64,000 nt of DNA from Macrostomum lignano (GCA_002269645.1 NIVC01000583.1:372001-436000), one strand, 5' to 3'; shown: positions 1,360-35,573, counted from the first letter of the stretch. Made by a program: numbers and translations. Notes: a model not told the origin generated them from the sequence alone.

Positions 1360-2183
1360 AATCCCGGGATCCTGGACAAAAAATTGACCCAATCCCGGGA
1401 TCCCGGGCCAATCCCGGGATTGAACAAACAAATTTACGGGAAGCTTTCCCATTGTCCACAAAACAATTTCTCAACCAATTTGAGCATCATTTGGGTTTCT
1501 ACTTTCTATTTCTAGCTTATACGAGTAGAACTGCATTGATAAAATAGTTGAAGTTACATGTAGTTGTTAGTTGTACATACATACTAAACTACACCCTCTC
1601 CCCTCGGATTAGGACCGTATACGCTGCGCTGGTGCCTCTCTCTGCCCCCAACACAGACCACCTCACACGCACACACACACACACACAGAGACTCAGACTC
1701 AGAACCCAGTCCGCACCCCACCCCCCATTTTTCCCTTTCCCTTCCTTAGCTGCGCCTGCGCACTGCGGCGGGGCCCGGGCCAGTGGGCCCAGTGTCCAGG
1801 CCATCGCCACTTAGACAGCTAGAGTCTAGACTAGAGTCAGACCCCTTAGTCTAGTGACTAGTAAGCCTAGCTAGTGCTTGATACAGTTGATTGATAGTCC
1901 TACTGTCCTTCATTCCCTTCCTTATGAAGCACTAAGAATCGTACACTAAGCACTAAGCACTTAAGCACTAAGAAGCACCCCTATAGAATCGTACATGTCA
2001 TTCTATAACTTCATTCTCAGGATGCAAAATCCTCTCAAAACTGTTAAGTGCTAATTGCAAGACGAAAAATATTCACTTCTGCAAAGTGTAAATTCCAATC
2101 CCGTGTTTACCGGGATCCCGGACCCCTAATCCCGGGATCCCGAACACTAACAAAAAGCCGGGATCCCGGGATTGGGACCCCTA
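1360..2183. repeat. Two clusters of palindromic CCCGGGATCCCGGG motifs (1360-1420 and 2095-2183); possibly the arms of an old MITE
   Basis: AATCCCGGGATCC(CGGG) recurs about 3 times in each cluster. No matching terminal pair or TSD was found. Confidence 0.4.
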
Positions 2184-4299
2184 CTGAGCGCATGCAAGCG
2201 CGCCAAATGCTGTCCCTAGATGAAGTTCTGTTTACTCATTCTTGGCAGATCTGTTCTTACTTAAATTTCTTAGCAGATCTGTGAATTTTGGTTAACACAT
2301 TCTTAACAGATCTTTTCTTACTTAAATCTCTTAGCAGATCTGTATCTGCTTTTGTCTTACAAGATCTTACAAATCTTTGCAAGCCATTTTTTATTGTTTG
2401 GTACGTAGAAAACATTCGTGATTTTTAGAAAATACTTATTAGGTAAAGAGAAAACAAAATTTCCAACTGTATATCAGAAAAAAGACTTTCGTATATTTTC
2501 ACATTTCTCTGCTGGATCTTGTCAGATCAGTTCTTGCAGATCTGTACAGACCAGTTTTGAAAAGTGTCTGAATTGTTTTTTTCCACAAAATATTTAACAT
2601 TATAGTAATTACGTTTTTTTAATGATTTGTATTTATTTTAGTTGTTCTTCTGGCAGCCAACAGTAAATGAATTTGTTTAAATATTCTTTCCGCAGTTCTG
2701 AACATAGTGGACCCTTATAGTTTGAATTCTCGCTCTTGCAATTTATCCATCCATCTCAGTTCTTTCTTTTGACTTAGCCGAATACGTAATTTTTAATTCC
2801 TTAAATTGTTTGTTGTTTCATAGTCTAGTATCACTATTTTTTACTTTTTTAGCCATAATAACTTTTTTGATTGAGTATAGCATGGCTTTAAATAAAGAGC
2901 AGATTGCGTCATCAATTAAAAAAATTTGACATAATTGACAGACTGACTATAAAATGTATGCTATATATATATCTATATAATATATATATCTAGGCTTGTC
3001 TCCTACTCCCAGGCCTATAAGTATGAGTAGGCCTAGGCCTATGACTTTGTTCTATGCTTTAATAGAAACAGAATGCATGTCTAGACCTAGTGATGTTGTC
3101 CATTAATAATTCATTAATCCATTAATAATTCAGAAATTCAGTTTAGTTACATACATAGATCAGTATTTTTTGTATTTTTTTGCATTTCATTATATTATAT
3201 TTATATATACATACCTAGTTCTAGCCCCTAGGCTAGGGCTAGGCTAGTTCTAGTGACCTAGCTAGTAAGTAAATCTTAATTAAATAGGTCTATTCTGTTT
3301 TTGTTTGTTTTATTTGTTTTTATTTGCTTATCTAGATTTATAAATAGGTAGACTGACATATCTGTAAAACTTGGTTTTAATCCCTCCTTGATTTTAAACA
3401 CTTAGGTTAAGAGTATAATGTCTATTTTTAGTAAATAGTGTTATAACTAGGCTTATCATTTTAATTTTAAAATAAAATAGGCCCTACTCTACTAAAAATT
3501 GTAATTGCTATATAGGGTATAGTTTTTATGAATAAAAATTAAACCTGGATGCTTAAATATAGGCTTATGGTTGTTAGAAAGTTATCTTAAGCCTTGATCT
3601 ACTATTTGAAGAATGTAGATAGGCATAGCAAAATCTAAAAGTATTTATACTAGATAGGCCTAGATGAATAATATGAGAAATATAGAATAGAAGAAAACAG
3701 GTCTAAATTTAATTAGACCAAAGAAATTTTACAAAAGTTATTACTCTGACTATATAAAAACATAACAACAATATTTGTTTTATATTTTAGTTATTTTGAA
3801 TTGAATATTAATGTTTAAAATCCTAGAACTTTATTACAATTTTCCCTTTCATTGCAGCTACTTTACATGGTCAATATGGCATCGCTACTTATGGGTTCCA
3901 AGCTTGTCTTTATACCAAGTGGCAAAGTGGCAAGCATCCTATGATTGCTAAAAGAAAAATGAAGCCAGCCTAAAGTAAAAATGCAACATGATAAAGAGCC
4001 CTAAAGTATTACTAAGAGCTCTTAATAGACCTACTTTTATTGATAACAAAGTAAGCTTTCTAGCAATATTGACTTCATACATGCGCAACCTCCAAAATTT
4101 GGTCGGCCGTGCGACTTAGTTTTAACAAAAATGCGACGTAGTTTTCGGCCAAAAATGCGACTTACATGAAAAAAACCTGAAAGCAAAATTAACGCAACTT
4201 TGGGTAAACGGCAGGAGTAACTATAACTGTCTTTATTAAGGCAAAATGCTTCGTCAGCTACTTAATACTACTTTGGTATTTATTTGGGTGGGCATTTTT

Positions 4300-4362
4300 G
4301 CAACTTACCTTGGTTGGCCGCCAAATCAGTCGTCCATATCGGCCAACTATTGTGCATGTATG
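4300..4362. repeat. Internal degenerate copy of the hAT right end, defining a MITE-like unit at 4076-4362
   Basis: CAACTTACCTTGGTTGGCCGCCAAATCAGTCGTCC...ACTATTGTGCATGTATG closely matches 10582-10651 (CGACTTACTTGGTTGGCCGCCAAATCGGTCGGCC...ACTGTTGCGCATGTATG). Confidence 0.9.
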
Positions 4363-4806
4363 GTTTTGACTCTTGTCATTCCTAATCGTATTTGTACCCC
4401 ATGTGGCACTAGAACAGTACACTTGACACGGAGTGTTTTAGGCATGATTGTACAGTGTAAGGTTGCAAAAGTGGGGAGTGGCAGAGATACATATGTATAT
4501 ATAGCTGTATGAGTATGATGGCACAAGCTAAGGCTAAGTCAATGCATGCAGCGATAAAAGCAGTCTGTAAAGCCAAATAGTGAAAGTTAACCTTAACTTA
4601 TAGCACCTTGGCAGCCTATGCTGTCTGCCTGCATCTGATACGAGCATATAACTAAACTACCAAGGCAATTGGTTGTATTTACACTTACTTTCTGTACATG
4701 AATTGGTAAAGGTAAGGGCTTTTAAATGTTTTATTTATATAGTAATACTCATAAATCAATTTTATTTTATCACCAAAATCATATACTCGACTTAATCTTT
4801 CACAGA

Positions 4807-7800
4807 ATGATGTACAGCCTTAGTTGTCTTTGCCTACTGATTCTAAGTGGCATCCTAGCTATCAATGGTATTCTAGCTGAGAGTGAGTGCTCAATTGTTA
4901 TAAATGAGTTAAATACTGATGAGCCTAATATTGGATCTCAAGAATTTTCAGAGTTCATTGAGCTGAAGAAAGTTTGTTCCACAACTGCAATGCTATTAGG
5001 ATCAGTGCCAGTGAGACTCCGTGATTTTCTTCTGATTGGAGTTCAAGAATATAGCGGCGATTTTAGACGACCTGTGGTTTCATTTTCTGCTGACTTCTAT
5101 CGGTTCTCGGGCTTCAAAACGGACAGCAGTTTCTTTGTTATTGCATCAAAAGAGAAGCAGGAAGCAGCAGATATGTTTTTTACCGATACATCTATTGGGT
5201 ATCAGGGAAAAACTAGACATGGGCTGCCAAGTTCCGCTCCTAGTGGATCATCGCAGTCATCCATCATTGATTTTTTCAAGTCTGCTAGTAAGACAATTCC
5301 AACAGAACCAAATGCATTAAAGAATGGGAATGGTAAAAGTGCTATGGCCATTATTCTCTTGTATCAACGAGACTTTTCTAGATCAGAATCGGACAGTTCA
5401 AGTTCCACAACTGCCAGTAGCATTGGAAAACTGCGACTAGCTAAAATGCATGCAACACAAAGAAGACCTGTTTATGAAGATAAAATTATCATTGATAACT
5501 CATTAGCTGAAATTATTAGGAACAATGTGCATGACATGATCATCTATGCACGAAGTACACAAAATAACAGGTGCACATTTTTTTAGTCCATTTATCGTAG
5601 GCTAAGAGACAAGCCCAACTACATCTTAAAGCCAGCAAGAGAATGGGATGAACTTGGTCATGAGGACTATTCAATAAACCGGTGCCCTGAATCCAGCAGT
5701 GAGTTACGAAAGCCTTTGCTTTTTACAAGGTGGAAACTTGGACAGTTGACTCCAGGTAGAGAAAATGACTGCTCAGGTGCTCATTGGATTTTAGAGGACA
5801 ATATTGAAGCCATCATAAATACACCTTCAAGAGAAGCAGGTACATTGGCAGACTCAGCATTAGCATCTGCTTCATCAGCAACAGAAAGAATCGAAATGCG
5901 ACTAGCTCCTGCTCCAGCTCCATGTTCTGAAAGCTCACACCGTAGTGAATTGGCCAGGTCCTATGAATTTTCAGAGCAAATAGCAGCTAATCGAGATCAT
6001 GCTGTTCAAACTGCTGCTGCAGAAACTTCAAATTTTTGCTCTGCTGCAAATGTACAGGAAAGAAGAGAGTTGTTGGAGAATGACCAGCAAACAAGCAAAC
6101 TACAAGTGGAAATTATTAGGCAAGTAAATATTCAAAGACAATCAACGAAACGATCACTTTGCCAAAGTCCTATTGTTGATTTAGATTCGAGCGACTCAAG
6201 GGGTTCAGGTGATGTTGAAATAGTACAAGTAAATACTGCAGAAGCAGGGCCATCGCAAAAAAAAATACCATGCATAAGCACATCTGCAGACGCATGTCTA
6301 GCCACTTCAGCATCAAAGCCCTCGTCTTCCTCTATGATGGGCGAAAATATTGAAGTTTTCCCTAAAAAGGACTGGGAGGATACATCTGGTTTTCGAGAGG
6401 AGTGGTTACATTCTTTGGAGATGCACCAGTCACAGTAAGTAAATGGAAACTGACGAACTGTAAATTAATGTATAGTGTATTGTGTATTGCACTTATTAGC
6501 ATATTGCTTTTAGATACTCACAAATAGTCCAAATCCCAAAATATTCTCTAATTTGACCATTGCAGATCATTTTCAAGAAAATTTGTGTCACAAGAAATGA
6601 AGACATGGTTTCAATATGTTCAAAACACCGAAGATCTATCAAGATCTGGAATACAATGTCGGATCTGCAGAAAATTTTTGAATGCACATAAGAAAAAGGA
6701 GACAAATCTAGAGAGCCAACGTAAGTTAACTTTTGCAACAGAACAAGGCTACATTCCCAAAGGTCATGCAAAAGATAGCGTACGAAGAAAACTACAGGAA
6801 CATTCATCAAATACACTTCAGTGACGCCATAAAGTGGATGAAGGAAAAACATACTTCAGTTCTTGCAAAGCAACTCAAACAGATGAATGAGGCCGCTAGA
6901 CTAGCTAAAACTAAACGAGATGAAATAACAGCCCAAGTTTTGACAACAGTTTATGCCGAAGTCAAATCTAATATTCCATTCAGTGCTCATCCAAATATGA
7001 TTGATTTACAAGTAAAAAATGGGTTGGATATGGGGAGCCATCATAAGCATCGCAAAAGTGCCGCAGCAATGGTGGAATCAATCAGTAATACAATGCATCG
7101 GACATTTGTGAATTACATTAAAAGTGCTGACAATCTTCCGATTTCTATTGTACTAGATACAACGTCTGATATTCATTCAAACAGCTACGTCATGATATAC
7201 TTCAGAGTTCTTGAAAACAGCCAACATTTGATGTTTTTTATCGGTTTAAACGTCTGACTGAAGTAGAGACTGGACGAAGCATTTATGAACTTCTCATCCG
7301 TTTATTTTCGGATGACAAGCTAGAAGATGAAATCAAACGAAGGCTATTGGGGGTGACAACTGATGGTGCATCCGTAATGACAGGAAGTCGAGTGGGATTA
7401 ATAAGTCAACTGAGGCCTTGGGCTAGCAAACAATTTTTTCAGCACCATTGTGCAGCGCATAAGTTAGAACTTTCAATCTATCATGCCTTTGAAATCTTCC
7501 CATTTATGCAACATCTCGATAAGAATATAAATTCTCTACACAAATTTTATATGAGCCACGCTGTTAAACGTAAGGCATCTTTGGCACAAACTTCGGAAGC
7601 ACTCAACTTGGTTTTCTATGAATTAAAAAGAATATATCGCATCAGGTGGGTTGCATCGGAAGTGTCTGCTCTTGATGTGATTCGAAAGTCGTACTACTTG
7701 CTTCTGACAAATTTAGAAAATATCAAATCACCTTCCTCAGGCTTTGATGACGAAAGTAAAGCAACTGCCTCTGGATTATTGAAAACATTGCAAAATGTCC

Positions 7801-8588
7801 GGTATTATTCATTACATCTATTTCTCATGGACATTCTAAAATTACTGGAATTTGAGTCCTTGCAGTTTCAAAGAGCCAAGGGTACATTTATTGGCTTGCA
7901 AGAACGCCACACTAACCTTATCCATTCACTAGAAACCTTAAAAACGAACAATGGTCCTCGCATTGTGGACTTTTTGGCTTCCTGCAAGTGTCGTCGAGTT
8001 TTGGGAACTGCAGATGGATATCCGCAGCTGGAATACCATTCAGGATGTCACACAAGAGACCTATCTTATTCTAACTTTGCTTGTCCTTCCGGCCCTGGAA
8101 GCAGCGATCCAACAGAGAGGTTTGAGTTGAAGCAACCAGGTTCTGCTGCAGACAGATCTCTAAGAAATAGATTATTTGATGCTAGTGGACGTGGCAGTGT
8201 TGTTGACATGGGAGCTTATCCAGCACTGGATGAGATTCGCAGTCGAATCATTGATAGCATAATTGATCAGCTGCGTAATTATTTTCCTGAGGATGACTAC
8301 TCAATATTTAATGTGCTCAACCCAGTGTTATTGCCTAATGCTGAAACATTACATACTGTCTTTACATACAGTTCGAGAATCATACCTCTTGCTAGACGGT
8401 TTGGAATGGAAGATGACAGCTCTGAATCTGAAACAGAGGACCATCTTTCTGATTCAGACTCTAGAGATGCAGATGCTTCAGAACGCGCTACAGAAAGGAC
8501 AATCTCTGGTCAGACTACAGTTCTTCTAAGTTCATATATAAGACCGTTAGAATCTTGCAGTTTTAATTTGCTAATTAAATATTATTAA
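4807..8588 (+). pseudogene. Disrupted gene: signal peptide + lamin-tail-like (LTD) domain + S/A-rich linker + Zn finger + ZNF862/KIAA1586-type hAT transposase, lacking its C-terminus; join 4807..6434, 6566..8588 (about 1,200 aa reconstructed)
   Basis: N-terminus MMYSLSCLCLLILSGILAINGILA. LTD-like motifs IVINELN..EFIELK, NGNGKSAMAIILLY, SINRCP, LTPGRENDC. The frame is preserved across an in-frame TAG at 5584-5586. Intron GTAAGT(6435)...CTAAT..TTGCAG(6565) restores the frame. Transposase motifs: CRIC..EH, LDTTSD, TDGASVMTG, HCAAHKLEL, IRW. Frameshifts near 6820, 7220 and 7308. No C-terminal catalytic E or dimerisation domain is seen before the satellite. Confidence 0.8.
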
Positions 8589-8786
8589 AAGTATGATTTG
8601 CAATTGTAATAGGGCTGAAAAATTACTGCTTATAAGTTATTCTATCCCTATTTCTATTCCTTAGCCATTTCTGGCTTCGTAATTCTTAATTTTTCAAATT
8701 GATGCGTTAATGCACACGTAGCCTACACCCTAGTAAGTGATACATTAAATTCATCCTAAACTAATCCTATCCTAATAATCCTAAAG

Positions 8787-10440
8787 ATGCTCTGCGACTT
8801 AACTCAGTCCTGCTGCGACTTACCTCGGCCCTGCTGCGACTTACTCGGTCCTGCTGCGACTTAGCTCGCCCTCAGTGCGACTTAGCTCTCGCTCGGTGCG
8901 ACTTAGCTCGCCCTCGGTGCGACTTAGCTCGCCCTCGGTGCGACTTAGCTCGGTCCTGCTGCGACTTAGTGCGACTTAGCTCTCGCTCGGTGCGACTTAT
9001 TTTGCCCTCGGTGCGACTTAGCTCGGTCCTGCTGCGACTTAGCTCGCCCTCGGTGCGACTTAGCTCTCGCTCGGTGCGACTTAGCTCGCCCTCGGTGCGA
9101 CTTAGCTCGGTCCTGCTGCGACTTAGTGCGACTTAGCTCGGTCCTGCTGCGACTTAGTGCGACTTAGCTCTCGCTCGGTGCGACTTAGCTCGCCCTCGGT
9201 GCGACTTAGCTCGGTCCTGCTGCGACTTAGTGCGACTTAGCTCTCGCTCGGTGCGACTTAGTTCGCCCTCGGTGCGACTTAGCTCGGTCCTGCTGCGACT
9301 TAGTGCGACTTAGCTCTCGCTCGGTGCGACTTATTTTGCCCTCGGTGCGACTTAGCTCGCCCTTAGTGCGACTTAGCTCGGTCCTGCTGCGACATAGCTC
9401 GCCCTCAGTGCGACTTAGCTCTCGCTCGGTGCGACTTAGTTCGCCCTCGGTGCAACTTAGCTCGGTCCTGCTGCAACTTAGCTCGCCCTCGGTGCGACTT
9501 AGCTTGGTCCTGCTGCGACTTAGTGCGACTTAGCTCTCGCTCGGTGCGACTTAGTTCGCCCTCGGTGCGACTTAGCTCGGTCCTGCTGCGACTTAGCTCG
9601 CCCTCAGTGCGACTTAGCTCTCGCTCGGTGCGACTTAGTTCGCCCTCGGTGCGACTTAGCTCGGTCCTGCTGCAACTTAGCTCGCCCTCGGTGCGACTTA
9701 GCTTGGTCCTGCTGCGACTTAGTGCGACTTAGCTCTCGCTCGGTGCGACTTAGTTCGCCCTCGGTGCGACTTAGCTCGGTCCTGCTGCGACTTAGCTCGC
9801 CCTCGGTGCGACTTAGCTCGGTCCTGCTGCGACTTAGTGCGACTTAGCTCTCGCTCGGTGCGACTTATTTTGCCCTCGGTGCGACTTAGCTCGCCCTCGG
9901 TGCGACTTAGCTCTCGCTCGGTGCGACTTAGTTCGCCCTCGGTGCGACTTAGCTCGGTCCTGCTGCGACTTAGCTCGCCCTCAGTGCGACTTAGCTCTCG
10001 CTCGGTGCGACTTAGTTCGCCCTCGGTGCGACTTAGCTCGGTCCTGCTGCAACTTAGCTCGCCCTCGGTGCGACTTAGCTTGGTCCTGCTGCGACTTAGT
10101 GCGACTTAGCTCTCGCTCGGTGCGACTTAGTTCGCCCTCGGTGCGACTTAGCTCGGTCCTGCTGCGACTTAGCTCGCCCTCGGTGCGACTTAGCTCGGTC
10201 CTGCTGCGACTTAGTGCGACTTAGCTCTCGCTCGGTGCGACTTATTTTGCCCTCGGTGCGACTTAGCTCGCCCTCGGTGCGACTTAGCTCTCGCTCGGTG
10301 CGACTTAGTTCGCCCTCGGTGCGACTTAGCTCGGTCCTGCTGCGACTTAGCTTGCCCTCGGTGCGACTTAGCTCGGTCCTGCTGCGACTTAGCTTGCCCT
10401 CGGTGCGACTTAGCTTGCCCTCGGTGCGACTTACCTTGTC
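8787..10440. repeat. 21-bp minisatellite family (GCGACTTAG + CTCGCCCTCGGT / CTCGGTCCTGCT / CTCTCGCTCGGT) with 10-bp variants, inside the hAT right arm
   Basis: Unit read directly. The core GCGACTTA is also found in the element's left subterminal region (4110-4150) and near the right end (10581). Confidence 0.95.
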
Positions 10441-11809
10441 TTCAGTGCTGCAACTTACAGCACTTACAACTCTTTTTGTGTTTTTCTCTTTCTCTTTGCT
10501 CCCTTTTTCTCATTTTTTCCTTTTCCTTTCCCCTTTTTCGTCTTTTGTTTTTTCGTTTTTTTTGGCGGTTAATCAATTTTGCGACTTACTTGGTTGGCCG
10601 CCAAATCGGTCGGCCGGATCGGCCGACTCGGCCGACTGTTGCGCATGTATGATTGACTTTAAAATCTTTCAGTACTGGACTCTTTCAGTTTCAATTATTT
10701 GCAAACCAATTTAATTGTAACATTGTAGTAAAAGATGCACCTGGTTTTTTAAAATGTTTCTGCTTCTATTTTTTAGTTTCTAAAAGTATTGCTCACCCTA
10801 ATTTCATTAGTCCATTGTACCATTAGTATTTTTTCTATTGAGTGTGTGCTTAACTTTTGTTTTGAAGTTGACTTATTTTTTGCTTGTGCTATTTCCCTTG
10901 TGCATACAAGTTTTATTTCATGAGCATATATGTGTATTTGTTTACATTTTCACAAATAAATATGTCTACTTTATTTTGATTGTTCAATGACATTTGCTTT
11001 TGTTCTGGCAGCTTACTAGCACAATACTAAAAGTGCAGAATCTAATAAGAAAGTCCTGTCATAACTCGTGTTCTTTATTGGAATTAAATTAGTGCATTGG
11101 GTTTTATAAATGGATTACTAAACAGATCTGGGAAGATTTGATAAGACGGACAATGCATTCAATTGGTAAAGCTTAATACATCTTACAAGATCTGCCCAGA
11201 TCTCCTAAGATCTGCTCGTGCAGACCGTGCAAGATCTTCCTGCAGATCTTGTAAGTTCTGCCTATATATTTTAATAGTGCAGATCTGTTACGTTCTTGCA
11301 AGAACGTAGCGAGAAGCTCCAGACAGATCTGCTAAGAAATGGCATGACGATTTCATCTAGGGGTACGCAGGCATGCAGTCACACACGCTCACACAGGGTG
11401 TGCAGCGGCCCTTTGACTTCTAATCGTCACATGGGTGTGAATAGCCAAGCGCACGGAGTTGGAAAGGGCCGGTTCAGAGGAAAAAGCTTTATCAAAAAAG
11501 CCAATAAGCCAATCCGTCAGATAGGTGCTAAGTAAAGGTCGGAATGGTTTGCTTGCTGAGTGAACTTTTGGTGCAACCGCTAATCAAAGGCGACAATTGA
11601 AAAAATAGTTGCGCCTATTTCGAGTATTTCTCTGACCCCTGACAAATATGTTCGTACATGTAAAGACAAAATGAAGACATTACGGAGATAGGAGGTTTTC
11701 ATTTTTTCAGCACAAAAATTGTTATTGCTTTTCATAAAAAGGAGACCCAAAGTTCACTCTATCTATCCTATATAAAAAACAAAAACAAAAAACAAAATGA
11801 AAATCTTGT

Positions 11810-12200
11810 TTTTCTATTTTTCTATTTTATCTACTTTTTCTATTTTATCTATTTTATCTATTTTATATATTTTTTCTATTTTATCTATTTTATCTATTTT
11901 TTCTATTTTATCTATTTTATCTATTTTTTCTATTTTATCTATTTTATCTATTTTATCTATTTTATATGTTTTTTCTATTTTTTCTATTTTATCTATTTTA
12001 TCTATTTTATCTATTTTATCTATTTTATCTATTTTATCTATTTTATCTATTTTATCTATTTTTCTATTTTATCTATTTTATCTATTTTATCTATTTTATC
12101 TATTTTTTCTATTTTATATATTTTTTCTATTTTTTCTATTTCATCTATTTTTTCTATTTTATCTATTTTATCTATTTTATCTATTTTATCTATTTTATCT
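11810..12200. repeat. 9-bp AT-rich tandem repeat (TCTATTTTA)n
   Basis: Read directly. Confidence 0.95.
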
Positions 12201-12289
12201 ACTGTATCATCCTTAGCTAATGACTGCGCAACAGAAATGTATAACAAATTTATGCCATTTTTATGATTTTCAGGTCCTGGACATTAACG

Positions 12290-12490
12290 TAGTATATAAC
12301 ATTATCATCGAATCCTAATTCTATCAACGAAAAGCTCTATGAATATAAAAGATATGAGCATTTGGTCTGCCTCCTATCAAAAGCAATAACATTTTTTGTG
12401 CTAAAAATGAAAACCTCGTAATGTATTTTTTCGGAAAAACCGGCCTCCTAAACTTTTCCAAGAAACATAGTTTCCCGTCCTTCTACTTGC
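12290..12490 (+). repeat. Dispersed repeat, similar to 42720-42965
   Basis: Shared segments TTTGG(G)TCTGCCTCC.ATCAAA, ATGAAA(A/G)CCTCG..TAATGTATT and GGCCTCCTAAA.TTTTCCAAGAAAC.TAG.TT.CCC occur in the same order at both loci. Confidence 0.7.
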
Positions 12491-12610
12491 GCAGTCCTTG
12501 GGCAGGCATGTACACACTCCGTGCCACGGAGATTGGTTTGGTTCAACCATGGTAACTGCAGAGCTCAAAAATAGGATCAACAGTGTTTTGTCTAAAACAC
12601 TAACTGTCAA

Positions 12611-12699
12611 TCACAATGTTTCAATCAGCTGTGTGTACAGCGACAGCAGACAGTCCGCCTGCTCCGTGGCCGGAGGAGGCGGTGTTGGCGGCTGCGGCT

Positions 12700-12730
<31 letters not shown>

Positions 12731-13291
12731 CGGTACCACAACCAGGCTGTCCTCTCCGCCGGAATCCAGCCTCCAGTAGACTCCGCCATCATCGGCCTTT
12801 CTGGCGACGCTCTTGGCTCTGTCCGACTCTTTGTTGTCACCGCCGCCGTCGTCGTCTTGGTCGCTTCGCTCGCTCTTGTCGTCGATGATGTCGACTACGC
12901 CAGGCTGCTGCTGCATGGCAAGCCGCCGTACCTGCCAGGCCGGGGACATGCCGTCCGTTCTGCCCAGCTGTCCGGCCTGCCGCTGCCGGCGCTCCAGGCG
13001 CTCCTGTTGAATCTCCAGCTGCCGCTGCTGACGGAGCTGCTGGGCCCGGCTGAGCCTCTGGCCGGCGTGGCGACACTTGCGCACTTGACGCGACGCCAGG
13101 AGGAGAATCGACACCGTCAGCACGGCCAGGAAGGCGCCAGTGCCGACCGAGGCGACTGTCTTGGCCAGGTTGCTGTAGTCGCTGTCGCTTTCGCTGATGC
13201 CCACCTGCTCTTTGCTGTTGCTGTTGATGATGCTGACGGCGGTTGATTGTTGACTGGCGTTGCTAGGGTGCATTCTGGTTCGGCCTGTCAT
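12611..13291 (-). CDS. Orphan single-pass membrane protein-like ORF (226 aa) with Q-, D- and P-rich cytoplasmic tail
   Basis: GC-rich island with host-like codon use. Hydrophobic segment VGTGAFLAVLTVSILLLAS is followed by basic RQVRKCRH. No recognisable family. Confidence 0.5.
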
Positions 13292-13394: not shown

Positions 13395-13970
13395 TCACCT
13401 GTCCCCTGTCTATGATCCCCACCTGTCCCCCTGTCTATGATCCCCACCTGTCCCCCTGTCTATGATCCCCACCTGTCCCCCTGTCTATGATCCCCACCTT
13501 TCCCCTGTCTATGATCTCTACCTGTCCTTTGTCTTTGATTCCCACCTGTCTATGATCCCCACCTGTCTATGAACCCCACCTGTCCTCTGTTTTTGATCCC
13601 CTCCTGTCTATGATCCCCTCCTGTCCCCCTGTCTATGATCCTCACCTGTCTATGATCACCTCCTGTCCCCTGTCTATGATCCCCTCCTGTCCCCCTGTCT
13701 ATGATCCCCTCCTGTCCGCCTGTCTATGATCCTCACCTGTCTATGATCCCCTCCTGTCCCCTGTCTATGATCCTCACCTGTATATGATCCCCTCCTGTCA
13801 CCTTTCTATGATCACCTCCTGTCCCCTGTCTATGATCCCCTCCTGTCCTCTGTTTTTGATCCCCTCCTGTCTATGATCCCCTCATGTCCCCTGTCTATGA
13901 TTCCCTCATGTCCCCTGTCTATGATTCCCTCCTGTCCCCTGTCTATGATCCCCTCCTGTCCCCTGTCAAA
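13395..13970. repeat. 24-25-bp minisatellite (CTGTCTATGATCCCCTCCTGTCCCC) with 18-bp variants
   Basis: Read directly. Confidence 0.9.
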
Positions 13971-14988
13971 TACACCTCTTGTCTTATGCTAATGATCCTG
14001 CTGTGTAATGAATAAGCCAGCCAGTCTGCAAGTTTGTAGGCAAAACTCTCAAGCTCTCAAACTCACCGCGCTCTCACTTATATATCATATATTGTACTGC
14101 GATCGATAACTAACAGGTGTTCATCGACTGTACACACAATTAAGCACTCATAGAGTAGTGACACAACAGATCCCACAGAGAATCACCCCGCAGCCCACCA
14201 AAGTTGGAGAGCTGAAATTATTGATGCTAAACACATATAATTGCAGCTTGACCTCACCAGCTTACAGAAACAGCAGACAGCCGAATTTTTAGCTTCCTTG
14301 ATTGTGACCGCAACCGAGTGCCCAGCTATTGTTGGATGAAGCAGTAAGGAAGGCAATCCTGGGCGGGACCTTCCGAGCATTTAGCATTTAACATAAGGCG
14401 TCTTCAGCGTATCTGCATGTGCTTTTTAAGCATGGCTTCCTCCTTTATTTTCGCCAGTGCGCCAGCGGCCCGATCCTCTTCCGACCAATTAGAATCGGGT
14501 AAGATGATTCTTTCAATACGAGCTACTCGATTTAATTGGCCAATAATTAGTCTCTGCACTTTCGTAGTTTCAGAACGTAGAAAACCTGTTTATTTATGAA
14601 ACAGTGTATTTCACGGACAACTTGAGCAGAATAACGCTTCCTATGAGTTTTAATGCCTGCTGCCTTTGCTCTGTGCGTAATACGAGCATTGTATATTTAG
14701 CATGAAAAAGATAATATAGCATTTCCCGGTCAATTTGGTCCTAGAATCACTCAATTTAATTCGCAATAGAGAATTCCAATTCATTCCGCCGTCACTAGAG
14801 ATATGTCTATGGCCAAATATGCTGTTTTGTTCCACTCAATTTAATCCGGGGGGGGCACTAATTTCGCGTATTTATTTTAAAAGCTCTTACTTTTAAAGAA
14901 AAGAGATTGTACCATGACCTTTGTGCCCGCTGGGCACTTATTCTTGCCTTTTAATGCCATAGACTACATTTAAGCCGGCTTGCAGGAG

Positions 14989-15708
14989 TCAAACTTACTT
15001 TAATGCAAATTAGCGGGCAGTAAATGACATTTAACGCCCGATTGTCTATGTCAAACTTACTTTAATGCAAATTAGCGGGCAGTTAATGATATTTAACGCC
15101 CGATTGTCTATGTCAAACTTACTTTAATGCAAATTAGCGGGCAGTAAATGACATTTAACGCCCGATTGTCTATGTCAAACTTACTTTAATGCAAATTAGC
15201 GGGCAGTAAATGACATTTAACGCCCGATTGTCTATGTCAAACTTACTTTAATGCAAATTAGCGGGCAGTTAATGATATTTAACGCCCGATTGTCTATGTC
15301 AAACTTACTTTAATGCAAATTAGCGGGCAGTAAATGACATTTAACGCCCGATTGTCTATGTCAAACTTACTTTAATGCAAATTAGCGGGCAGTTAATGAC
15401 ATTTAACGCCCGATTGTCTATGTCAAACTTACTTTAATGCAAATTAGCGGGCAGTTAATGACATTTAACGCCCGATTGTCTATGTCAAACTTACTTTAAT
15501 GCAAATTAGCGGGCAGTTAATGATATTTAACGCCCGATTGTCTATGTCAAACTTACTTTAATGCAAATTAGCGGGCAGTTAATGACATTTAACGCCCGAT
15601 TGTCTATGTCAAACTTACTTTAATGCAAATTAGCGGGCAGTTAATGACATTTAACGCCCGATTGTCTATGTCAAACTTACTTTAATGCAAATTAGCGGGC
15701 AGTTAATG
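14989..15708. repeat. 62-bp highly homogeneous tandem repeat, about 11.6 copies
   Basis: Unit TCAAACTTACTTTAATGCAAATTAGCGGGCAGTTAATGACATTTAACGCCCGATTGTCTATG; period 62 counted; no spacers. Confidence 0.95.
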
Positions 15709-16603
15709 TCATTAACCACAACCAGCTCTGAGCCTGAGGCAACTCTGCCCATTCCCCAGTCTCCTGAGCACATACAAGCGAGGCAAGGACGCTGGCACGC
15801 ACTCATACACACAGGGTGTACAGCAGCCCTTTGACTTTCTAATCGTCACACACTAACACTACCTTATACTATAGTCTATGGTCTAGAAAGATAACAGCAC
15901 GCATTATCGGTAGAGCAGCTCTGAGTGGGGTAGTCTATGGCCATAGACTATTTTCAATGAAAAACCAGAGTAGACAAATGTCATGTCGACCTCATGAGAA
16001 GAAAGAGATTGATGTGGATACAATGGAACTCTTCTTGCTTATGGTATAGCTCCGAGTGATGTTTGTGTTTGGACACTAAGGAAATAGCTAGAACATTTTA
16101 ATAATACACTGAAACTTTGACATACGCTTTGGTACCCACCCTCTCACCTATCGAACTCATTCATCCTCATCAAGTCTGAAAAATAAATAGGCATATCATT
16201 GAAACTCTGAGATGGCAAGCTTGACTGAGTAGGTGGGTGTGATATCTGCTTCCAGTCCGAATGCAGGGGCAGCCAGCAACGCCCTGGAAATGAAATTTTG
16301 CCGATATCTCGTATTCAACAGCTTTACTGCACCTGTTTACTGCACCCATTTTTGCAGGAGTCGTAAACAGCATTCTTCTTGTTTATGGTGCAATTGCTTG
16401 TTAGCTAGCTGTGTAGTTGTTTTCTATGAAACTTGATACCAAAACAACTGTTACATTTGATTATACTAAGCAGAGATACATGAAAGTTAGAAAATTTTGA
16501 CAATAAAAAGTCCACTTGGCTACTTACAGAGGTAGTTTTTCGGCGACATAAATTACATGGCTGTATATTGGCAAAATACACTGCTACAGATCCTTACTCT
16601 GCT

Positions 16604-16845
<242 letters not shown>

Positions 16846-16949
16846 AGGTGGTAATAAGGAGCATTATTGGAATGGGAAAACATAGCAAAGAAAAGATATA
16901 GTAAGCGGAGAAGGATGAAGTGGAAGAAAAAATATCGGAAAACAGTGCG

Positions 16950-18065
16950 AGAAACAGACCGGAGAGTAGAGAGGGGAAGAGGAAAGAGGAAGGGAAGAGT
17001 GGAGAGAAAGGAAAGAGGGGAGAGAGGAAAGAGGGGAGAGAAGGAAAGAGGGGAGAGAGAGGAAAGAGGGGAAAGGAGGAAAGAGGGGAGAGAGAGGAAA
17101 GAGGGAAGAGGAAGGGAAGAGGGGAGGGAGAGGAAAGAGGGGAAAGAGAGGAAAGAGGGGAGAGAGAGGAAAGAGGGGAAAGGAGGAAAGAGGGGAGAGA
17201 GAGGAAAGAGGGAAGAGGAAGGGAAGAGGGGAGGGAGAGGAAAGAGGGGAAAGAGAGGAAAGAGGGGAGAGAGAGGAAAGAGGGGAGAGAGAGGAAAGAG
17301 GGGAGAGAGAGGAAAGAGGGGAGAGAGAGGAAAGAGGGGAGAGAGAGGAAAGAGGGAAGAGGAAGGGAAGAGGGGAGAGAGAGAGGAAAGAGGGGAGAGA
17401 GAGGAAAGAGGGGAGAGAGAGGAAAGAGGGGAGAGGAAGGGAAGAGGGGAGAGAGAGAGAGAGAGAGGAAAGAGGGGAGAGAGAGGAAAGAGGGGAGATT
17501 AGGAAAGAGGGGAGAGAGAGGAAAGAGGGGAGAGGAAGGGAAGAGGGGAGAGAGAGGAAAGAGGGGAGAGGAAGGGAAGAGGGGAGAGAGAGGAAAGAGG
17601 GGAGAGGAAGGGAAGAGGGGAGGGAGAGGAAAGAGGGGAGAGAGAGGAAAGAGGGGAGAGGAAGGGAAGAGGGGAGAGAGAGGAAAGAGGGGAGAGGAAG
17701 GGAAGAGGGGAGAGAGAGAGAGGAAAGAGGGGAGAGAGAGAAAAGAGGGGAGATGAGGAAAGAGGGGAGAGAAAGGAAAGAGGGGAGAGGAAGGGAAGAG
17801 GGGAGAGAGAGGAAAGAGGGGAGAGGAAGGGAAGAGGGGAGAGAGAGGAAAGAGGGGAGAGGAAGGGAAGAGGGGAGAGAGAGGAAAGAGGGGAGAGGAA
17901 GGGAAGAGAGGATAGAGAGGAAAGAGGGGAGAGGAAGGGAAGAGGGGAGAGAGAGAAAAGAGGGGAGAGGAAGGGAAGAGGGGAGAGAGAGGAAAGAGGG
18001 GAGAGAAAGGAAAGAGGGGAGAAAGAGGAAAGAGGGGAGAGAGAGGGAGAGAGAGAGAGAGAGAG
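16950..18065. repeat. Polypurine compound repeat (GAGGAAAGAGGGGA / GAGGAAGGGAA), forming the tail of the Penelope-like element
   Basis: Nearly pure A/G on the + strand; abuts the pLTR copy at 18066. Confidence 0.9.
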
Positions 18066-18140
18066 GAGGGCGCCTCCAATCTCGGGCACTGACACGGTAG
18101 AAAGTCAGAGAGGACTGAAAAAAGTCAATTTAAATTGAGT

Positions 18141-18593: not shown

Positions 18594-19563
18594 TCAATTG
18601 GCAGAAGCTGGTTCGAGCTGGCTGTGGCAGAGTAGATCCCGAAGGCTCCTCCCTTTAGTGAAGGCCGGCAGTACAGGGGCATCGCAGTGCTGTGCCACGC
18701 CGTCCCTCACCTTGGCAACCAGGGTGTCTGACCCAGCGCAGTGCGGCACAGTCAGTGGGATCGCCGGATTATGCAGCACCCCGGCCAGCTCGTTGGCGCC
18801 ATGTGGGACCAGAGTTTTCAGGACCGCGATGAGTTTGGCCTCCTGGCGTTGACGTCGTTCATTGGCCTTGGGTCCAAAGCCGTCTCGCGTCCACACTCCG
18901 GTGAAGGCAAAGTCCTCGAGACTATGGCCATCGTTGCTGAAGTGGCGGGCCACCGGAGTGTCGCGTGCGTGCCTGATGTCGCCGACGTGCGCTAGCATGC
19001 GGGCCCGGATGCTGTTGACCGTCTCGCCGACGTAGACCGTGCAGCTGCAGCGGCGGCAGAACACCGTGTAGACGGCGTTGACCGAGTTGCAGTCGATCCT
19101 CTGGCTGATGGTGATCTTGACGGTCGTGGACGCGGATCCCGGGCAGACGGAGGTGAATCTGGCGTGCGCCTGGCAGCACTTGCACAGCCGGGCCGGGTTG
19201 CACGGCAGGAAGCCGAACTCCCACCGCCTTGTCGGGTAGAAACCCAGCTCCGCCAGCACCTCGTATTTGATATTGCGTAGAAAACGCCTGTTATAGCCCT
19301 GGTGCTGCACCAGATTCGACAGCAGCTCGGTGCAGGCCGCGTCGAAGTCGACCATCCGGGAGCACCTGCGAGCGTATCTGATGAGCTGGGACTTGACCAC
19401 ACCCTTGAACGTCCACCTCGGATGAAATGAGTCGCGGTGGATAAGAGCTCGGCTGTCCGTGGGCTTGAAGAAGACTCTAGTCGCCAGACGCTTGGAGTCC
19501 CCCTCGCGGTCCCAGAAGACGGTGGTGTCCAGGAAGTTGACCTCGGTGCTGCTGTAGCAACCC
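18594..19563 (-). pseudogene. PLE ORF remnant: RT C-terminus/thumb (VNFLDTTV..RVFFKPTD..HP) + GIY-YIG endonuclease
   Basis: ORF 18594..19400 contains CNSVNAVYTVFC..C..VYVGET...R...H...PVARHF..GH....EAKLI..LKT..PHGAN. The upstream FLDT/FKPT motifs join via a frameshift near 19500. Confidence 0.9.
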
Positions 19564-19856: not shown

Positions 19857-20640
<784 letters not shown>

Positions 20641-20704
20641 AGTAACTTGATTATCATTAAAATGCATTAACAGTAAGGAATCAATAAGAAAGAGATGATA
20701 ATAA

Positions 20705-23864: not shown

Positions 23865-25181
23865 ATGTCTGCCTATCCGGACGACGAAGCCGCCGCCAGG
23901 AGCATCAGGCTGGTGCGGCTGTCCTGGAACTGCTCCAAGGATCCCGCTGAACCCTCAGCCAGGATCTCCGTGTCAGCCGCCGTGTACACCGCCGCGCTGA
24001 TGTCGCTGAGCCTCGTCAACGTCGGCTTCAACGCTGCCGCCCTGCGACTTCTCCCTCGGGTGATGCCACGCAGGAACCCGGCGCTTCGCCTGTTGAGCAG
24101 CCTGTCTGTGGCGGAGATCGCCTTCAACGGCTGCCAGCTGTGCTACCAGGCGCTGGTGTACACCTACGGCCAGCGGCGGCAGCAGTTCGTCAGCCAGCTA
24201 GCCGGCCTGCTCACCTGCTCTGCCATGCAGGCTCTGCTGCTGCTGCACCAGACTGCTCACCGGGTCCGCAACTGGACGATTGTGCTGGTGGGCTGGTGCA
24301 GGTTCGGCCGCCTGATCCGCTGCTGGGGCCGCGGCGGCGGCAGCGGCGGCAGCGGAGTTTCGGACAGCTGGGCGACCAGCTATGGAGCGATGCTGCTCAA
24401 CTTCGTCCTCTGTCTGGCGTTTAGCATCCCGAAGCTGTTTGAGTACAACGCCATCGTGTGCGTGAGCAGCCTCCGACTCAGCCAGGAGACCACCTGGCTG
24501 ACTGACTGGCCCGCCTACCGCATCGGCTACACCTACATTGCCGGCTACCTCAGCTCCACCGTCGGGCCCGTGGCCCTGCTCACCGGCCTGCACTGCGCCA
24601 TCCTGGGCGGCCTCGTGCGCGATCGGCGCTGCCGGCGGCGCGACGGTGATGACAATGCGCAGCTTGAAGAGCCCGGCGTAACTGCCGCGGCCGTCCCGGC
24701 ACCGATAATGGCTTCGCCGAGGCACGCGGACCTGCTGATCGCCGCACTGGTGGCCACCTTCTGCCTGTGCGAGCTGCCCGCATTCGTAGCCGCCCTGTTC
24801 TACCTGAACGACTCAAACTGGCGGCTCTCGTATCACCTGGTCCACCTGGCCCACCTGGGCACGGCCATCGACTCAACGCTCAACCTGCTGATCTACACGT
24901 TCCCGTACCGGCGGGCGGCTCGTTACTGGCGGCATCGGCGGGAGCGGCGGCAGGTGCGTCGCGGCCTCGTAGAGCTGCAGATGGCCGCCCCAGTCGGGCG
25001 GCGGCGGCGTCGGCATCGGAGAAACCGGCCATCATTACCGGCGAACGACAACAACGACGGCGACGGCGAGGCGAAGTCTGAGAATGACTTCGGCGACTCG
25101 CCGACGCGCGGCTTCACGACTGTCGGACGGTCGCACAGCCAGAACTGCAGTCGGGGCGCCGCCTACGCAAACCCGGAGTGA
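23865..25181 (+). CDS. Class A (rhodopsin-like) GPCR, peptide receptor type (FMRFamide/sex-peptide-receptor-like), 438 aa, single coding exon
   Basis: Seven hydrophobic segments. Divergent motifs: TM1 VGFN, TM2 LSVAE, TM3 CRF, TM4 FSIP, TM5 GPVALL, TM6 FCLCELP, TM7 DSTLNLLIY. Strong acceptor TTTTTCAG at 23788 precedes the ATG. Confidence 0.9.
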   Translation: MSAYPDDEAAARSIRLVRLSWNCSKDPAEPSARISVSAAVYTAALMSLSLVNVGFNAAALRLLPRVMPRRNPALRLLSSLSVAEIAFNGCQLCYQALVYTYGQRRQQFVSQLAGLLTCSAMQALLLLHQTAHRVRNWTIVLVGWCRFGRLIRCWGRGGGSGGSGVSDSWATSYGAMLLNFVLCLAFSIPKLFEYNAIVCVSSLRLSQETTWLTDWPAYRIGYTYIAGYLSSTVGPVALLTGLHCAILGGLVRDRRCRRRDGDDNAQLEEPGVTAAAVPAPIMASPRHADLLIAALVATFCLCELPAFVAALFYLNDSNWRLSYHLVHLAHLGTAIDSTLNLLIYTFPYRRAARYWRHRRERRQVRRGLVELQMAAPVGRRRRRHRRNRPSLPANDNNDGDGEAKSENDFGDSPTRGFTTVGRSHSQNCSRGAAYANPE

Positions 25182-25434
25182 ACTGACTGACCCCATATGG
25201 ATTTCAGCCGCTTCGTGATTTGCTTTAAGTCAGGCAATCCGACTGTACTTTCTCATCGTCTCCGTGTCTCCCCTTCCTCAATTAAGTTTCAATACTACCC
25301 CTGAGTGTTCGCTTCTAGCTCAGTGATTTCTTGTACTAATCCTTGTAGAGCTATGCGGAGCTTTTTGCTGTATTGCTGCTGTGGTCTTCTCGTCTGCCTG
25401 TTGCTAATATTAATGTCTGCAACAAATATTAATG

Positions 25435-25881
<447 letters not shown>

Positions 25882-30029: not shown

Positions 30030-30500
30030 ATTGCTGAGATGTCGAGGCTTACGGGTGGAATTGCTGAGATGTCAAGGCTTGCTGGGGGAATTGCTGAGAT
30101 GTCGAGGCTTACGGGTGGAATTGCTGAGATGTCAAGGCTTGCTGGGGGAATTGCTGAGATGTCGAGGCTTGCTGGGGGAATTGCTGAGATGTCAAAGGCT
30201 TGCTGGGGGAATTGCTGAGATGTCGAGGCCTGCTGGGGGAATTGCTGAGATGTCAAAGGCTTGCTGGGGGAATTGCTGGGATGTCAAAGACTTGCTGGGG
30301 GAATTGCTGAGATGTCGAGGCTTGCTGGGGGAATTGCTGAGATGTCGAGGCTTGCTGGGGGAATTGCTGAGATGTCAAAGGCTTGCTGGGGGAATTGCTG
30401 AGATGTCGAGGCTTGCTGGGGGAATTTCTTGAGCTGTCAAGGCTTGCTGGGGGAATTGCTGGGATGTCAAGGCTGACGGGGGGAATTGCTGAGATGTCAA
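30030..30500. repeat. 30-31-bp minisatellite (ATTGCTGAGATGTCGAGGCTTGCTGGGGGA) in Rap1 intron 2
   Basis: Read directly. Confidence 0.93.
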
Positions 30501-30707
30501 GGCAAATAGATTCACATTAAATGTTTTTGTCCCTTGCTTATTGGGTGCCCCGAAGGGGGGCAGTAGATTGCTATTTTTAAAATTAAATGTGCAACTATGG
30601 AATAATTGATGCTAAAAAGCTACTTAAAGTAGGCATTTAAACATTTTATCCGTATAAAATGAAGCTGTACCTTAAAAACAGTGCTCTTGTGGCAGAAGAT
30701 TACTTAC

Positions 30708-30848
30708 ATCCTCAACGTTTAGCTTAGCTTTGGCCGACGTCTCCAGAAAGGAGCAATTCCACTGGTGCGCCAGGCTCTGGCCCTGCTCTCGACTGACCGT
30801 GCGCTCGTCATCCAGGTCGCACTTGTTGCCAATCAGAATGATTGGCAC
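30708..30848 (-). CDS. Rap1: Rap1 exon 2 ([47 protein letters not shown])
   Basis: G4 NKCD and G5 ETSAK motifs; CAG acceptor and GTAAGT donor, both phase 0. Confidence 0.95.
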
Positions 30849-30939
30849 CTGCGGAGAAAGTGCGCAAATTCTGAGGTTTAAATATGAGCGTGATTGATTG
30901 ACAACTTATCGAAATGAAGCTTCTCGATTCTTGCTAGGG

Positions 30940-31266
30940 TAATAATAATAGAAAAAAAAAATTTTGATTACGCCTGCCCTAATGGGAAGATGTGCAACCG
31001 ACAGCTCAGCCGCAGCTATTGTGCGGCGCATCTGAAGGCTGCGTACGGCTGTTCAATCCAAGCACTGGGGGGTCGCCACACACAGCCTCAATTACCCCAG
31101 CTAATGCTGGCACCCATTTTACAGCTGGGTGAACTGAAGCAATGCAGAGTTAAAATGTCTGCTTCAGGACACAAATTGTTCTCCAGGTGGGCCGAGAATC
31201 GAACCACCGACCTTTCAGTTGTGAGCCCAACTTTCTATTCACTATTCACTAGGCTACAAACCCCTC
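30940..31266 (-). mobile_element. tRNA-derived SINE with CORE-like central domain, in Rap1 intron 1
   Basis: Minus strand: A-box-like TAGCCTAGTG, B-box GGTTCGATTC (31196-31205), then GTGTCCTGAAGCAGACATTTTAACTCTGCATTGCTTCAGTTCACCCAGCTGTAAAATGGG (resembles the MIR/CORE domain), and a (TTA)n-like tail. Confidence 0.65.
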
Positions 31267-31339
31267 TCTAACTATCAAGGTTGGAAGGCTTAGAAGAATT
31301 GAAGAATAGTCGGAAGATTTTTGGAAGGCAGGACTGAGG

Positions 31340-32430
31340 GCCACTCATTTTGGCGCCACAGGCACTCATTTTGGCGCTGCATACACTCATTTTAGCGCCA
31401 CAGGCACTCATTTTGGCGCCGCAGGCACTCATTTTGGCGCTGCATGCACTCACTTTGGCGCCACAGGCACTCATTTTTGGCGCCGCAGGCACTCATTTTG
31501 GCGCCACAGGCACTCATTTTGGCGCTGCAGGCACTCATTTTAGCGCCGCAGGCACTCATTTTGGCGCTGCATACACTCATTTGGGCGCTGCAGGCACTCA
31601 TTTTAGCGCCACAGGCACTCATTTTGGCGCTGCAGGCACTCATTTTGGCGCTGCATGCACTCATTTTGGCGCCACAGGCACTCATTTTGGCGCCACAGGC
31701 ACTCATTTTGGCGCCACAGGCACTCATTTTGGCGCCGCATGCACTCATTTTGGCGCCACAGGGACTCATTTTGGCGCTACAGACACTCACTTTGGCGCCA
31801 CAGACTCTCATTTTGGCGCCACAGACACTCACTTTGGCGCCGCAGACACACATTTTGGCCCCACGGACACTCACTTTGGCGCCACAGGGACTCATTTTGG
31901 CGCCACAGGCACTCATTTTGGCGCCACAGGCACTCATTTTGGCGCCACAGGCACTCATTTTGGCGCCACAGGCACTCATTTTGGCGCCGCATGCACTCAC
32001 TTTGGCGCCACAGGGACTCATTTTGGCGCTACAGACACTCACTTTGGCGCCACAGACTCTCATTTTGGCGCCACAGACACTCACTTTGGCGCCGCAGACA
32101 CACATTTTGGCCCCACGGACACTCACTTTGGCGCCACAGGGACTCATTTTGGCGCCACGGACACTCACTTTGGCGCCACAGGGACTCATTTTGGCGCCAC
32201 AGGCACTCATTTTGGCGCCGCAGACACTCATTTTGGCGCCACAGGCACTCATTTTGGCGCCGCAGACACTCATTTTGGCGCCACGGACACTCATTTTGGC
32301 GCCACAGACACTCATTTTGGCGCTGCATGCACTCACTTTGGCGCCGCAGGAACTCATTTTGGCGCCACGGACATTCATTTTGGCGCCACAGACACTCATT
32401 TTGGCGCCACAGACACTCATTTTGGCACCG
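31340..32430. repeat. 21-bp minisatellite (TTTGGCGCCACAGGCACTCAT) in Rap1 intron 1
   Basis: Read directly; about 50 copies. Confidence 0.95.
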
Positions 32431-35522: not shown

Positions 35523-35573
35523 TGATATGTCAACCACTCCAAATGCATCAACTCATTAACTGTGCCATTACAG

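Follow-up and report, generated by a model that had tools for sequence, protein, structure and literature searches.

Transposases of the hAT superfamily are nuclear enzymes that begin with a DNA-binding zinc finger. The enzymes closest to those considered here belong to the Buster/FAM200-ZBED5/ZNF862/KIAA1586 type (PF27073, DUF4371, Dimer_Tnp_hAT), and the structural reference for the superfamily is Hermes (PDB 2BW3, 4D1Q, 6DWW). The closest architecture is that of Vibrio cholerae Xds, which consists of a signal peptide, a lamin tail domain (LTD) starting at residue 30, an unstructured linker, an OB fold and a nuclease (PMC6746945). Here, a hAT element of Macrostomum lignano is described from a stretch of 64,000 nucleotides of the genome assembly (GCA_002269645.1, NIVC01000583.1:372001-436000; called the window, and always meaning the whole stretch), in which it occupies positions 4076-10651 (6,576 bp). 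It belongs to a hAT clade that, as a whole, sets a secretion-type leader and a domain of about 300 aa, probably cysteine-paired and absent from Pfam, before the zinc finger.

Architecture of the protein and its gene

Intact copies of the family encode a leader, a cysteine-paired module of ~310 aa, a disordered linker of ~200 aa with KKKR/RKRK patches, a zinc finger, an RNase-H-like DDE core and a dimerization domain, and this anatomy of element and protein is put forward with high confidence. For example, P0184 (PAA51197.1), an annotated M. lignano protein of 1,313 aa from locus L010, has a leader ending in MMLILLFNNCLAQ, followed by the module that begins with ECSIVINELN, the linker, the zinc finger, the DDE core and an intact dimerization domain (SSAEAERGFS). 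Its gene has a single GT-AG intron of 104 nt, in phase 2, at a site homologous to that of the window intron. The M. lignano annotation behind this protein is based on a genome-guided transcriptome from RNA-seq data (PMC5730564).

The window copy (Table 1) has the same layout up to the point where it is cut off. Exon 1 (4807-6434) encodes the leader, the module and the low-complexity linker, and the motifs IVINELN, EFIELK, NGNGKSAMAIILLY, SINRCP and TPGREN stand in a single frame (4879-5772). An earlier note on this DNA had described this leader and motif set in one frame, and one GT-AG intron leading into a zinc finger and DDE core; both are present, the latter in exon 2. The zinc finger extends over approximately 6597-6835, with IQCRICRKF at 6651-6677, and the hAT core comprises the blocks VLDTTSD (7150-7170; D), VTTDGASVM (7353-7379; D), HCAAHKLEL (7446-7472; CxxH) and RIRW (7638-7649; RW). 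The linker motif KDWEDTSGFREEWL is colinear with uninterrupted open reading frames (ORFs) of relatives. Upstream of the gene, identity to locus L001 is 85-87%, vs. 92% for the alignment spanning the coding exon.

The transposase half is of the FAM200-ZBED5/ZNF862/KIAA1586 type, as had been proposed earlier: the FAM200-ZBED5 RNase-H-like family PF27073 is on record for P0003, P0004 and P0184, and the relatives with names (ZNF862-like, KIAA1586-like and C17orf113-like) are 24-30% identical. The family also possesses the hAT dimerization domain (PF05699), which is matched by residues 546-595 of P0003 (27 bits vs. a cut-off of 21.4), by P0005 (32.9 bits) and by several long homologues, and the corresponding region of the window copy is deleted (8513/8514). 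DUF4371 was found on P0005 below threshold only. The repaired protein of the window copy had no match in the Pfam copy searched, and zf-BED (E 0.064) was the sole match of the raw window ORFs. Among PDB sequences, Hermes transposase is the top match of the intact relative P0005, a weak one (E 0.05) confined to a C-terminal motif, and the alignment spans the motif with the third catalytic residue. At this position, P0178 and P0184 have E, whereas P0003 has K; the core blocks were recognized by eye.

Leader, module and transposase are one protein, a conclusion based on the P0184 gene model, the uninterrupted ORFs of distant relatives and the conserved splice donor. Locus L007 has the leader through the zinc finger in one uninterrupted ORF, and two ORFs without introns, P0055 in L009 (1,111 aa) and P0087 in L008 (1,133 aa), align colinearly with the spliced window product across the junction. 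L001, at 92% identity, and L004, at 53% amino-acid identity, keep the donor motif and its phase. Counting against this conclusion, splicing in the window subfamily is inferred from a sister subfamily that is ~70% identical. The two outcomes named in the earlier note as speaking against a fusion, i.e., other copies without the module and separate transcripts for the two parts, were both decided in its favor, the second only through one RNA-seq-based gene model, that of the sister copy in L010. In L007, ~1.1 kb (2020-3148) separates the ORF that runs from leader to zinc finger from the remaining transposase, and this interval may be a nested insertion or, with GTCTGT as a weak donor, an intron.

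Alternatively, the gene could give two products, a secreted exon-1 protein of ~540 aa and a transposase translated separately from the ATG at 6597, the module then being a co-transcribed partner and no transposase domain. Intron retention would put a TAA in frame within the GTAAGT donor, and the transposase could be made, e.g., after trans-splicing at the AG acceptor. This is decidedly improbable. In the window, in L001 and in L004, the donor is exactly where the exon-1 ORF ends, but the last 25 residues of exon 1 form a conserved motif that runs colinearly into the zinc-finger region. An ATG lies 10 codons past the acceptor, and the M. lignano gene models P0004, P0178 and P0171 begin at MKTWFQY, although such starts may equally be those of the longest ORF left where exon 1 is broken. 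Many M. lignano mRNAs are trans-spliced and polycistronic precursors occur (PMC5730564), yet the RNA-seq-based model P0184 joins both exons, and in relatives without an intron at this site one unbroken ORF spans the entire protein. Two products are thus possible in M. lignano and, as a general explanation, contradicted by the intronless relatives.

Ancestry, fold and routing of the N-terminal module

Sequence comparison shows leader and module to be ancestral in the transposase across a distinct hAT clade, with purifying selection acting on them. A profile of P0001 and P0002 retrieved 184 module homologues (E <= 1e-3) among 1.84 billion representatives, and approximately 17 of them are about 1,000-1,250 aa long, with the module at the N-terminus. 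Eight long homologues (1,011-1,249 aa) were scanned against Pfam, and six have Dimer_Tnp_hAT at the C-terminus. The transposase-core profile is matched by all long module-bearing proteins, and more closely than by most relatives without the module, and in a rough midpoint-rooted neighbor-joining tree the module-bearing transposases form one clade and the module-less, ZNF862/KIAA1586-like ones the other. A third homologue search with a diverse alignment returned only six proteins, none of them named, and no bacterial homology was detected in the profile search, the source organisms of most of its 184 matches being not established. Between the window and L001 (dS 0.11), dN/dS is 0.21 for exon 1 and, in a check that the earlier note had named, 0.19 for the module. 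An intact ORF of 522 aa persists at 53% identity.

The N-terminal part had been taken for a secreted cargo protein or a captured extracellular gene, and both proposals are opposed by a module that is ancestral and selected across the whole clade. Likewise, there is only a very slight chance of a one-off capture (transduplication) of a host gene for a secreted protein, or of a domesticated host gene. Homology of L001 to the window is lost exactly upstream of 4363, and L006 is without module residues 1-248, but the latter gap is a 5' internal deletion within intact TIRs (terminal inverted repeats). All long homologues, even at ~25% identity, pair the module with a hAT transposase; four copies occupy different loci, with TIRs and distinct target site duplications (TSDs), and have independent inactivating lesions, as expected for copies of a transposon.

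The module has little resemblance to described domains. No Pfam family, LTD (PF00932) included, is matched by the window protein, by P0001 or by the family consensus, the latter giving HobA below the cut-off. Among individual members, LTD is the only Pfam family matched by more than two (2/41 and 8/71; best E 0.0011), and these matches do not reach the threshold of PF00932; for example, one, at 13.3 bits vs. a gathering threshold of 34.3, extends over positions 9-44 of the 109 in the model. The matched part corresponds to the strands INE...EFIEL...L.gY.L. An AlphaFold model of P0001 from a 2-sequence alignment was unusable (predicted local distance difference test, pLDDT, 32), and an alignment of 41 sequences was needed. 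The resulting model (pLDDT 84.6; predicted TM-score 0.87) is mostly beta with a few helices, and the module is predicted to be a beta-sandwich.

Foldseek found no significant match to this model in PDB or BFVD. The best PDB matches are antibody V domains (E 0.016, TM 0.2-0.4), and the top 50 PDB matches include no lamin chain and none seen of bacterial-type LTD; we know of no solved structure of the latter type, and a bacterial-type LTD fold is still conceivable. Compared with the human lamin A tail by hhalign, the module profile reached a probability of 0.2, which is not significant, and PDB sequences searched with a profile from the module alignment yielded chance matches only. The Ig-like lamin-tail fold was found neither in the model and its PDB matches nor by hhalign. 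The description of the module as lamin-tail-like is weakly supported: sub-threshold LTD matches occur in 8/71 members, but there is no match at threshold and no lamin fold among PDB matches. At its N-terminus the module appears weakly and remotely LTD-like, and the rest of it is unassigned.

The conserved module residues are E9, E27, D218, C231, C268, N295 and C297 (P0001 numbering), with C231, C268 and C297 conserved at 95-100%. The first two module cysteines, C3 and C32, located in the model at the start of strand A and at the end of strand B, are gained and lost jointly (46 homologues have both, 20 neither and 8 one; Fisher 1.4e-10, kinship ignored), which suggests that they form a disulfide.

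The leader is conserved in hydrophobicity and not in sequence. Among 70 homologues with a leader of 12-60 residues, the 10-residue Kyte-Doolittle mean is at least 1.8 in 60, vs. 5.8% of background windows (30-residue windows elsewhere in the same proteins), and at least 2.5 in 64% of leaders, vs. 0.2% of background windows. Typical leaders, such as MASRFFVFLFAFVALLLCFYA and MDLVQIVILLLICISGTSA, stop a few residues ahead of the first conserved Cys, and many have a basic n-region and small residues preceding the mature Cys. By this heuristic the leaders have the n/h/c organization of signal peptides, and the signal peptide of the earlier note is retained in that form, as a hydrophobic leader in 60/70 homologues.

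The linker patch, the zinc finger and the DDE core make sense in the nucleus alone. In many members the linker contains a basic patch (PKKKRV, PAPKKRKC, NRRKRKI), with the zinc finger and the DDE core after it, and the patch is suggestive of a nuclear localization signal (NLS). It reads RKRP, KKKRV and ERKRP in P0001, P0002 and P0184, respectively, and is degenerate in the window copy (PSQKKIPC, 6250-6273). The patch at this position (also SPKKKRVC in P0002 and PAPKKRKC in P0139) fits a monopartite NLS as well as a furin-type proprotein-convertase site, and the choice between them matters for where the protein ends up.

Secretory and nuclear signals in one transposase are a contradiction, for which a dual fate of the protein is proposed. 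The leader would be a working signal for the endoplasmic reticulum (ER), and the module would acquire disulfides as it folds in the secretory pathway. The protein would then be divided between two fates by competing signals for ER and nucleus, and only molecules that escape translocation, or whose translation starts downstream, would reach the nucleus and perform transposition. Leader and module would in this way be a built-in throttle or targeting device. This mechanism is tentative and has somewhat less than an even chance of being correct; anatomy and mechanism, taken jointly, are slightly favored.

Several points weigh against the proposal. The leader call is based on a hydrophobicity heuristic, and ~14% of homologues are without a hydrophobic leader (e.g., P0148, P0117, P0087). 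The co-variation of the cysteines carries no correction for phylogeny, basic triplets are frequent by chance, and the basic patches of the linker also fit proprotein-convertase sites. To our knowledge, a transposase entering the ER is without precedent, and a fully translocated protein is unable to act on nuclear DNA.

In the main rival explanation, the leader would be unused as an ER signal in vivo, or would be part of the fold, and the module would be a nuclear, LTD-like accessory domain. The beta-sandwich would then bind DNA, chromatin or the nuclear periphery and help to target or to assemble the transpososome. This explanation is unlikely, although far from negligible. The same ORF continues into the NLS-like patch, the zinc finger and the DDE core, and some members have no hydrophobic leader, but the hydrophobicity is kept in 86% in spite of the lack of sequence conservation, as in functional signal peptides. 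The invariant E9, E27, D218 and N295 might make up a site for a ligand or a metal, whereas the single, far-spaced cysteines, one pair of them co-varying, are like disulfides and unlike a nuclear zinc site. LTD is the sole recurrent Pfam match (2/41 and 8/71; best E 0.0011), yet at 13 bits against a cut-off of 34.3, over model positions 9-44 only; the top 50 PDB matches contain no lamin fold, and the hhalign probability against the lamin A tail is 0.2.

It is also conceivable, although improbable, that a cleavable signal peptide truly sends the transposases of this widespread eukaryotic hAT clade into the secretory pathway and that their disulfide-bonded domain acts outside the cytosol, in a layout inherited from, or convergent with, Xds-like bacterial extracellular nucleases. 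Such routing, if true, would make cell-to-cell, soma-to-germline or horizontal spread, or handling of extracellular DNA, possible. Under the dual fate preferred here, and wherever else the leader works, the question is how and why a transposase enters the ER, with self-limitation, targeting to the nuclear envelope or intercellular spread as possibilities; if the leader is idle, the module amounts to a new accessory domain for DNA transposases, whose target is of interest.

Boundaries, copies and decay of the window element

The element is delimited by a pair of 14-bp TIRs and an 8-mer just outside them at both ends (Table 1), which bears out the hAT element with TIRs and TSD that the earlier note had described; the span given there (4807-8588) holds for the coding part and falls short of the whole element. 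The TIR pattern has three matches in the window vs. a chance expectation of 0.19. Three further bounded copies were found at other loci of the same assembly: L005 (element 7117-13011, TSD CTTGGGTT, 98.5% identity to the window copy), L006 (8079-13323, TSD AATTTAAA, ~71% identity) and L010 (4539-10902, TSD TAACATCC). The short TIR, perfect and identical across the four copies, and the 8-bp TSD, different for each copy and present also at a family MITE (miniature inverted-repeat transposable element; TSD TCCAGAAA), are those of the hAT superfamily, and the family moves by hAT cut-and-paste. A search for TIRs and TSDs around the intronless ORFs of L008 and L009 gave nothing convincing, and bounded elements were not demonstrated there.

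Table 1. Features of the hAT element in the Macrostomum lignano window (positions counted from the first nucleotide of the window).
Feature	Position	Strand	Basis
Left TSD, ATTGACTT	4068..4075		Identical 8-mer at 10652-10659, just outside the TIRs
Left TIR, CATACATGCGCAAC	4076..4089	+	Perfect reverse complement at 10638-10651; also bounds L005, L006 and L010
Left-end unit corresponding to the whole family MITE, with degenerate inner TIR at 4349-4362 (2 mismatches)	4076..4362		MITE comparison
Upstream non-coding region, presumed promoter and 5' untranslated region	4363..4806	+	Promoter role inferred
Signal-peptide-like hydrophobic leader, MMYSLSCLCLLILSGILAINGILA, 24 aa	4807..4878	+	Translation; similar leader in 60/70 homologues
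Conserved N-terminal module, ~310 aa, broken by TAG at 5584-5586	4879..5805	+	184 homologues, AlphaFold model, dN/dS 0.19
Low-complexity linker	5806..6434	+	Ends with conserved KDWEDTSGFREEWL motif (6367-6408), by alignment
Intron, GTAAGT...TTGCAG, phase 2	6435..6565	+	Donor motif and phase kept in L001 and L004
Exon 2, zinc finger and RNase-H-like hAT core, cut off at 8513	6566..8513	+	98% identity to M. lignano P0003, 69% to P0004
Junction of 504-bp deletion (L005 11519-12022)	8513..8514		BLAST breakpoints
Internal minisatellite, 21/42-bp units on TGCGACTTA, 79 copies	8792..10433	+	Tandem Repeats Finder
Right subterminal region and right TIR (10638-10651)	10434..10651		Aligns with right ends of L005, L006 and L010
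Right TSD, ATTGACTT	10652..10659		Same 8-mer as left TSD

The window copy is decayed and non-autonomous, its coding capacity being lost. The TAG in the module replaces a codon that is Glu in other lineages, and relative to L005 there are frameshifts at 6819 (-2 nt, in a CACA repeat) and at 7234 (-1 nt, in a T run). The one stop of the earlier note was found again, with two frameshifts in place of its three. The 504-bp deletion takes the last ~145 codons, with the hAT dimerization domain and the catalytic-E motif, and a protein repaired from the window copy alone is therefore truncated at the C-terminus. Weakening this picture, T homopolymers adjoin the stop and the 1-nt frameshift, and a dinucleotide repeat contains the 2-nt loss, so that some of the apparent decay could be assembly error; for the 504-bp deletion such an origin is unlikely.

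L005 has lesions of its own, namely deletions of 39 bp and of 1 nt in the module, an insertion of 2 nt, and K at the catalytic-E position. In its protein P0003 the motif reads SSAEAKRGFS, with Lys aligning with the catalytic Glu of Hermes, whereas P0178 and P0184 keep Glu (SSAEAERGFS); the Lys looks like a copy-specific inactivating change. Intact, transcribed helper copies apparently exist in M. lignano. The window copy would be mobile in trans only, by the transposase of intact copies that have the same TIRs and TGCGACTTA repeats, and its mobilization would proceed by ordinary hAT cut-and-paste to give 8-bp TSDs.

The TGCGACTTA repeats may be subterminal sites of transposase binding, by analogy with other hAT elements. 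The window has 82 matches to TGCGACTTA, all within the element and all on the + strand, vs. 0.37 expected; three are near the ends and 79 in the internal array of 1.6 kb. The array varies in length among copies, from ~1.6 kb in the window to ~0.5 kb in L005 and ~0.7 kb in L006. Subterminal repeats of the TGCGACTTA/TGCGACGTA type are located at 4110, 4133 and 4156.

A free MITE of 297 bp in L010 (11122-11418, flanked by TCCAGAAA) is 89.5% identical over 276 nt to the left-end unit of the window element, in reverse orientation. This suggests that the subfamily of the window and L005 gained a new left terminus from a MITE located upstream of the gene. The homology of L001 begins exactly at 4363. 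A simple nested insertion of a MITE at 4076-4362 was considered and rejected, because the flanks ATTGACTT and GTTTTGAC form no TSD.

Outside the element, an intact ORF of 257 aa at 35562-36335 (+) has a sulfotransferase domain (PF17784, E 5.5e-53) and is presumably a host gene or exon. Two other ORFs have no Pfam match: one of 438 aa at 23865-25181 (+) with several hydrophobic segments, by eye a putative multi-pass membrane protein, and a Cys-rich one of 268 aa at 18594-19400 (-), by eye a putative GIY-YIG-type retroelement nuclease. Tandem repeats and minisatellites with units of 4-62 bp fill a large share of the window and result in many spurious long ORFs; they span 153-544, 11809-12201, 13398-13967, 14988-15713, 16605-18067, 19861-20642, 25433-25881, 30030-32426, 45137-47650, 49120-51945, 53187-55197, 55868-61129 and 63057-63762.

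Comparison with described systems

A literature search, in which Repbase and Dfam were not covered, found no hAT transposase with a signal peptide or LTD, and the architecture with leader and module, shared by the whole clade, is apparently undescribed. M. lignano transgenesis and the intact copy in L010 (PAA51197.1) make the family experimentally tractable.

The Buster/ZBED5/ZNF862-type transposases are the closest enzymes. They share 8-bp TSDs, short TIRs and 24-30% identity with the family, have a zinc finger before an RNase-H-like DDE core with CxxH and RW, and end in a dimerization domain, but start at the zinc-finger region. None of the nine representatives compared (P0006-P0014) has a leader or module, and all fall outside the module-bearing clade. 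Similarity to Hermes is very weak (E 0.05) and lies in the LSIPxSxAxxERxFS motif aligned with P0005, and Hermes differs in having an N-terminal BED finger and neither leader nor beta-sandwich module. The lamin tail domain (PF00932; PDB 1IFR, 1IVT, 2LLL, 3UMN) resembles the module in its first strands (INE...EFIEL...L.gY.L), but the module is approximately three times longer, scores far under the gathering threshold and retrieves no lamin tail from PDB.

As to the order of parts, Xds comes closest, and the likeness is best taken as a parallel of layout. In Xds a bona fide Pfam LTD is combined with an OB fold and an EEP nuclease, whereas the family described here has an at best remotely LTD-like domain and a DDE transposase; in both, a signal peptide or signal-peptide-like leader is followed by an LTD-type domain, a linker, a nucleic-acid-binding domain and a DNA-cleaving domain.

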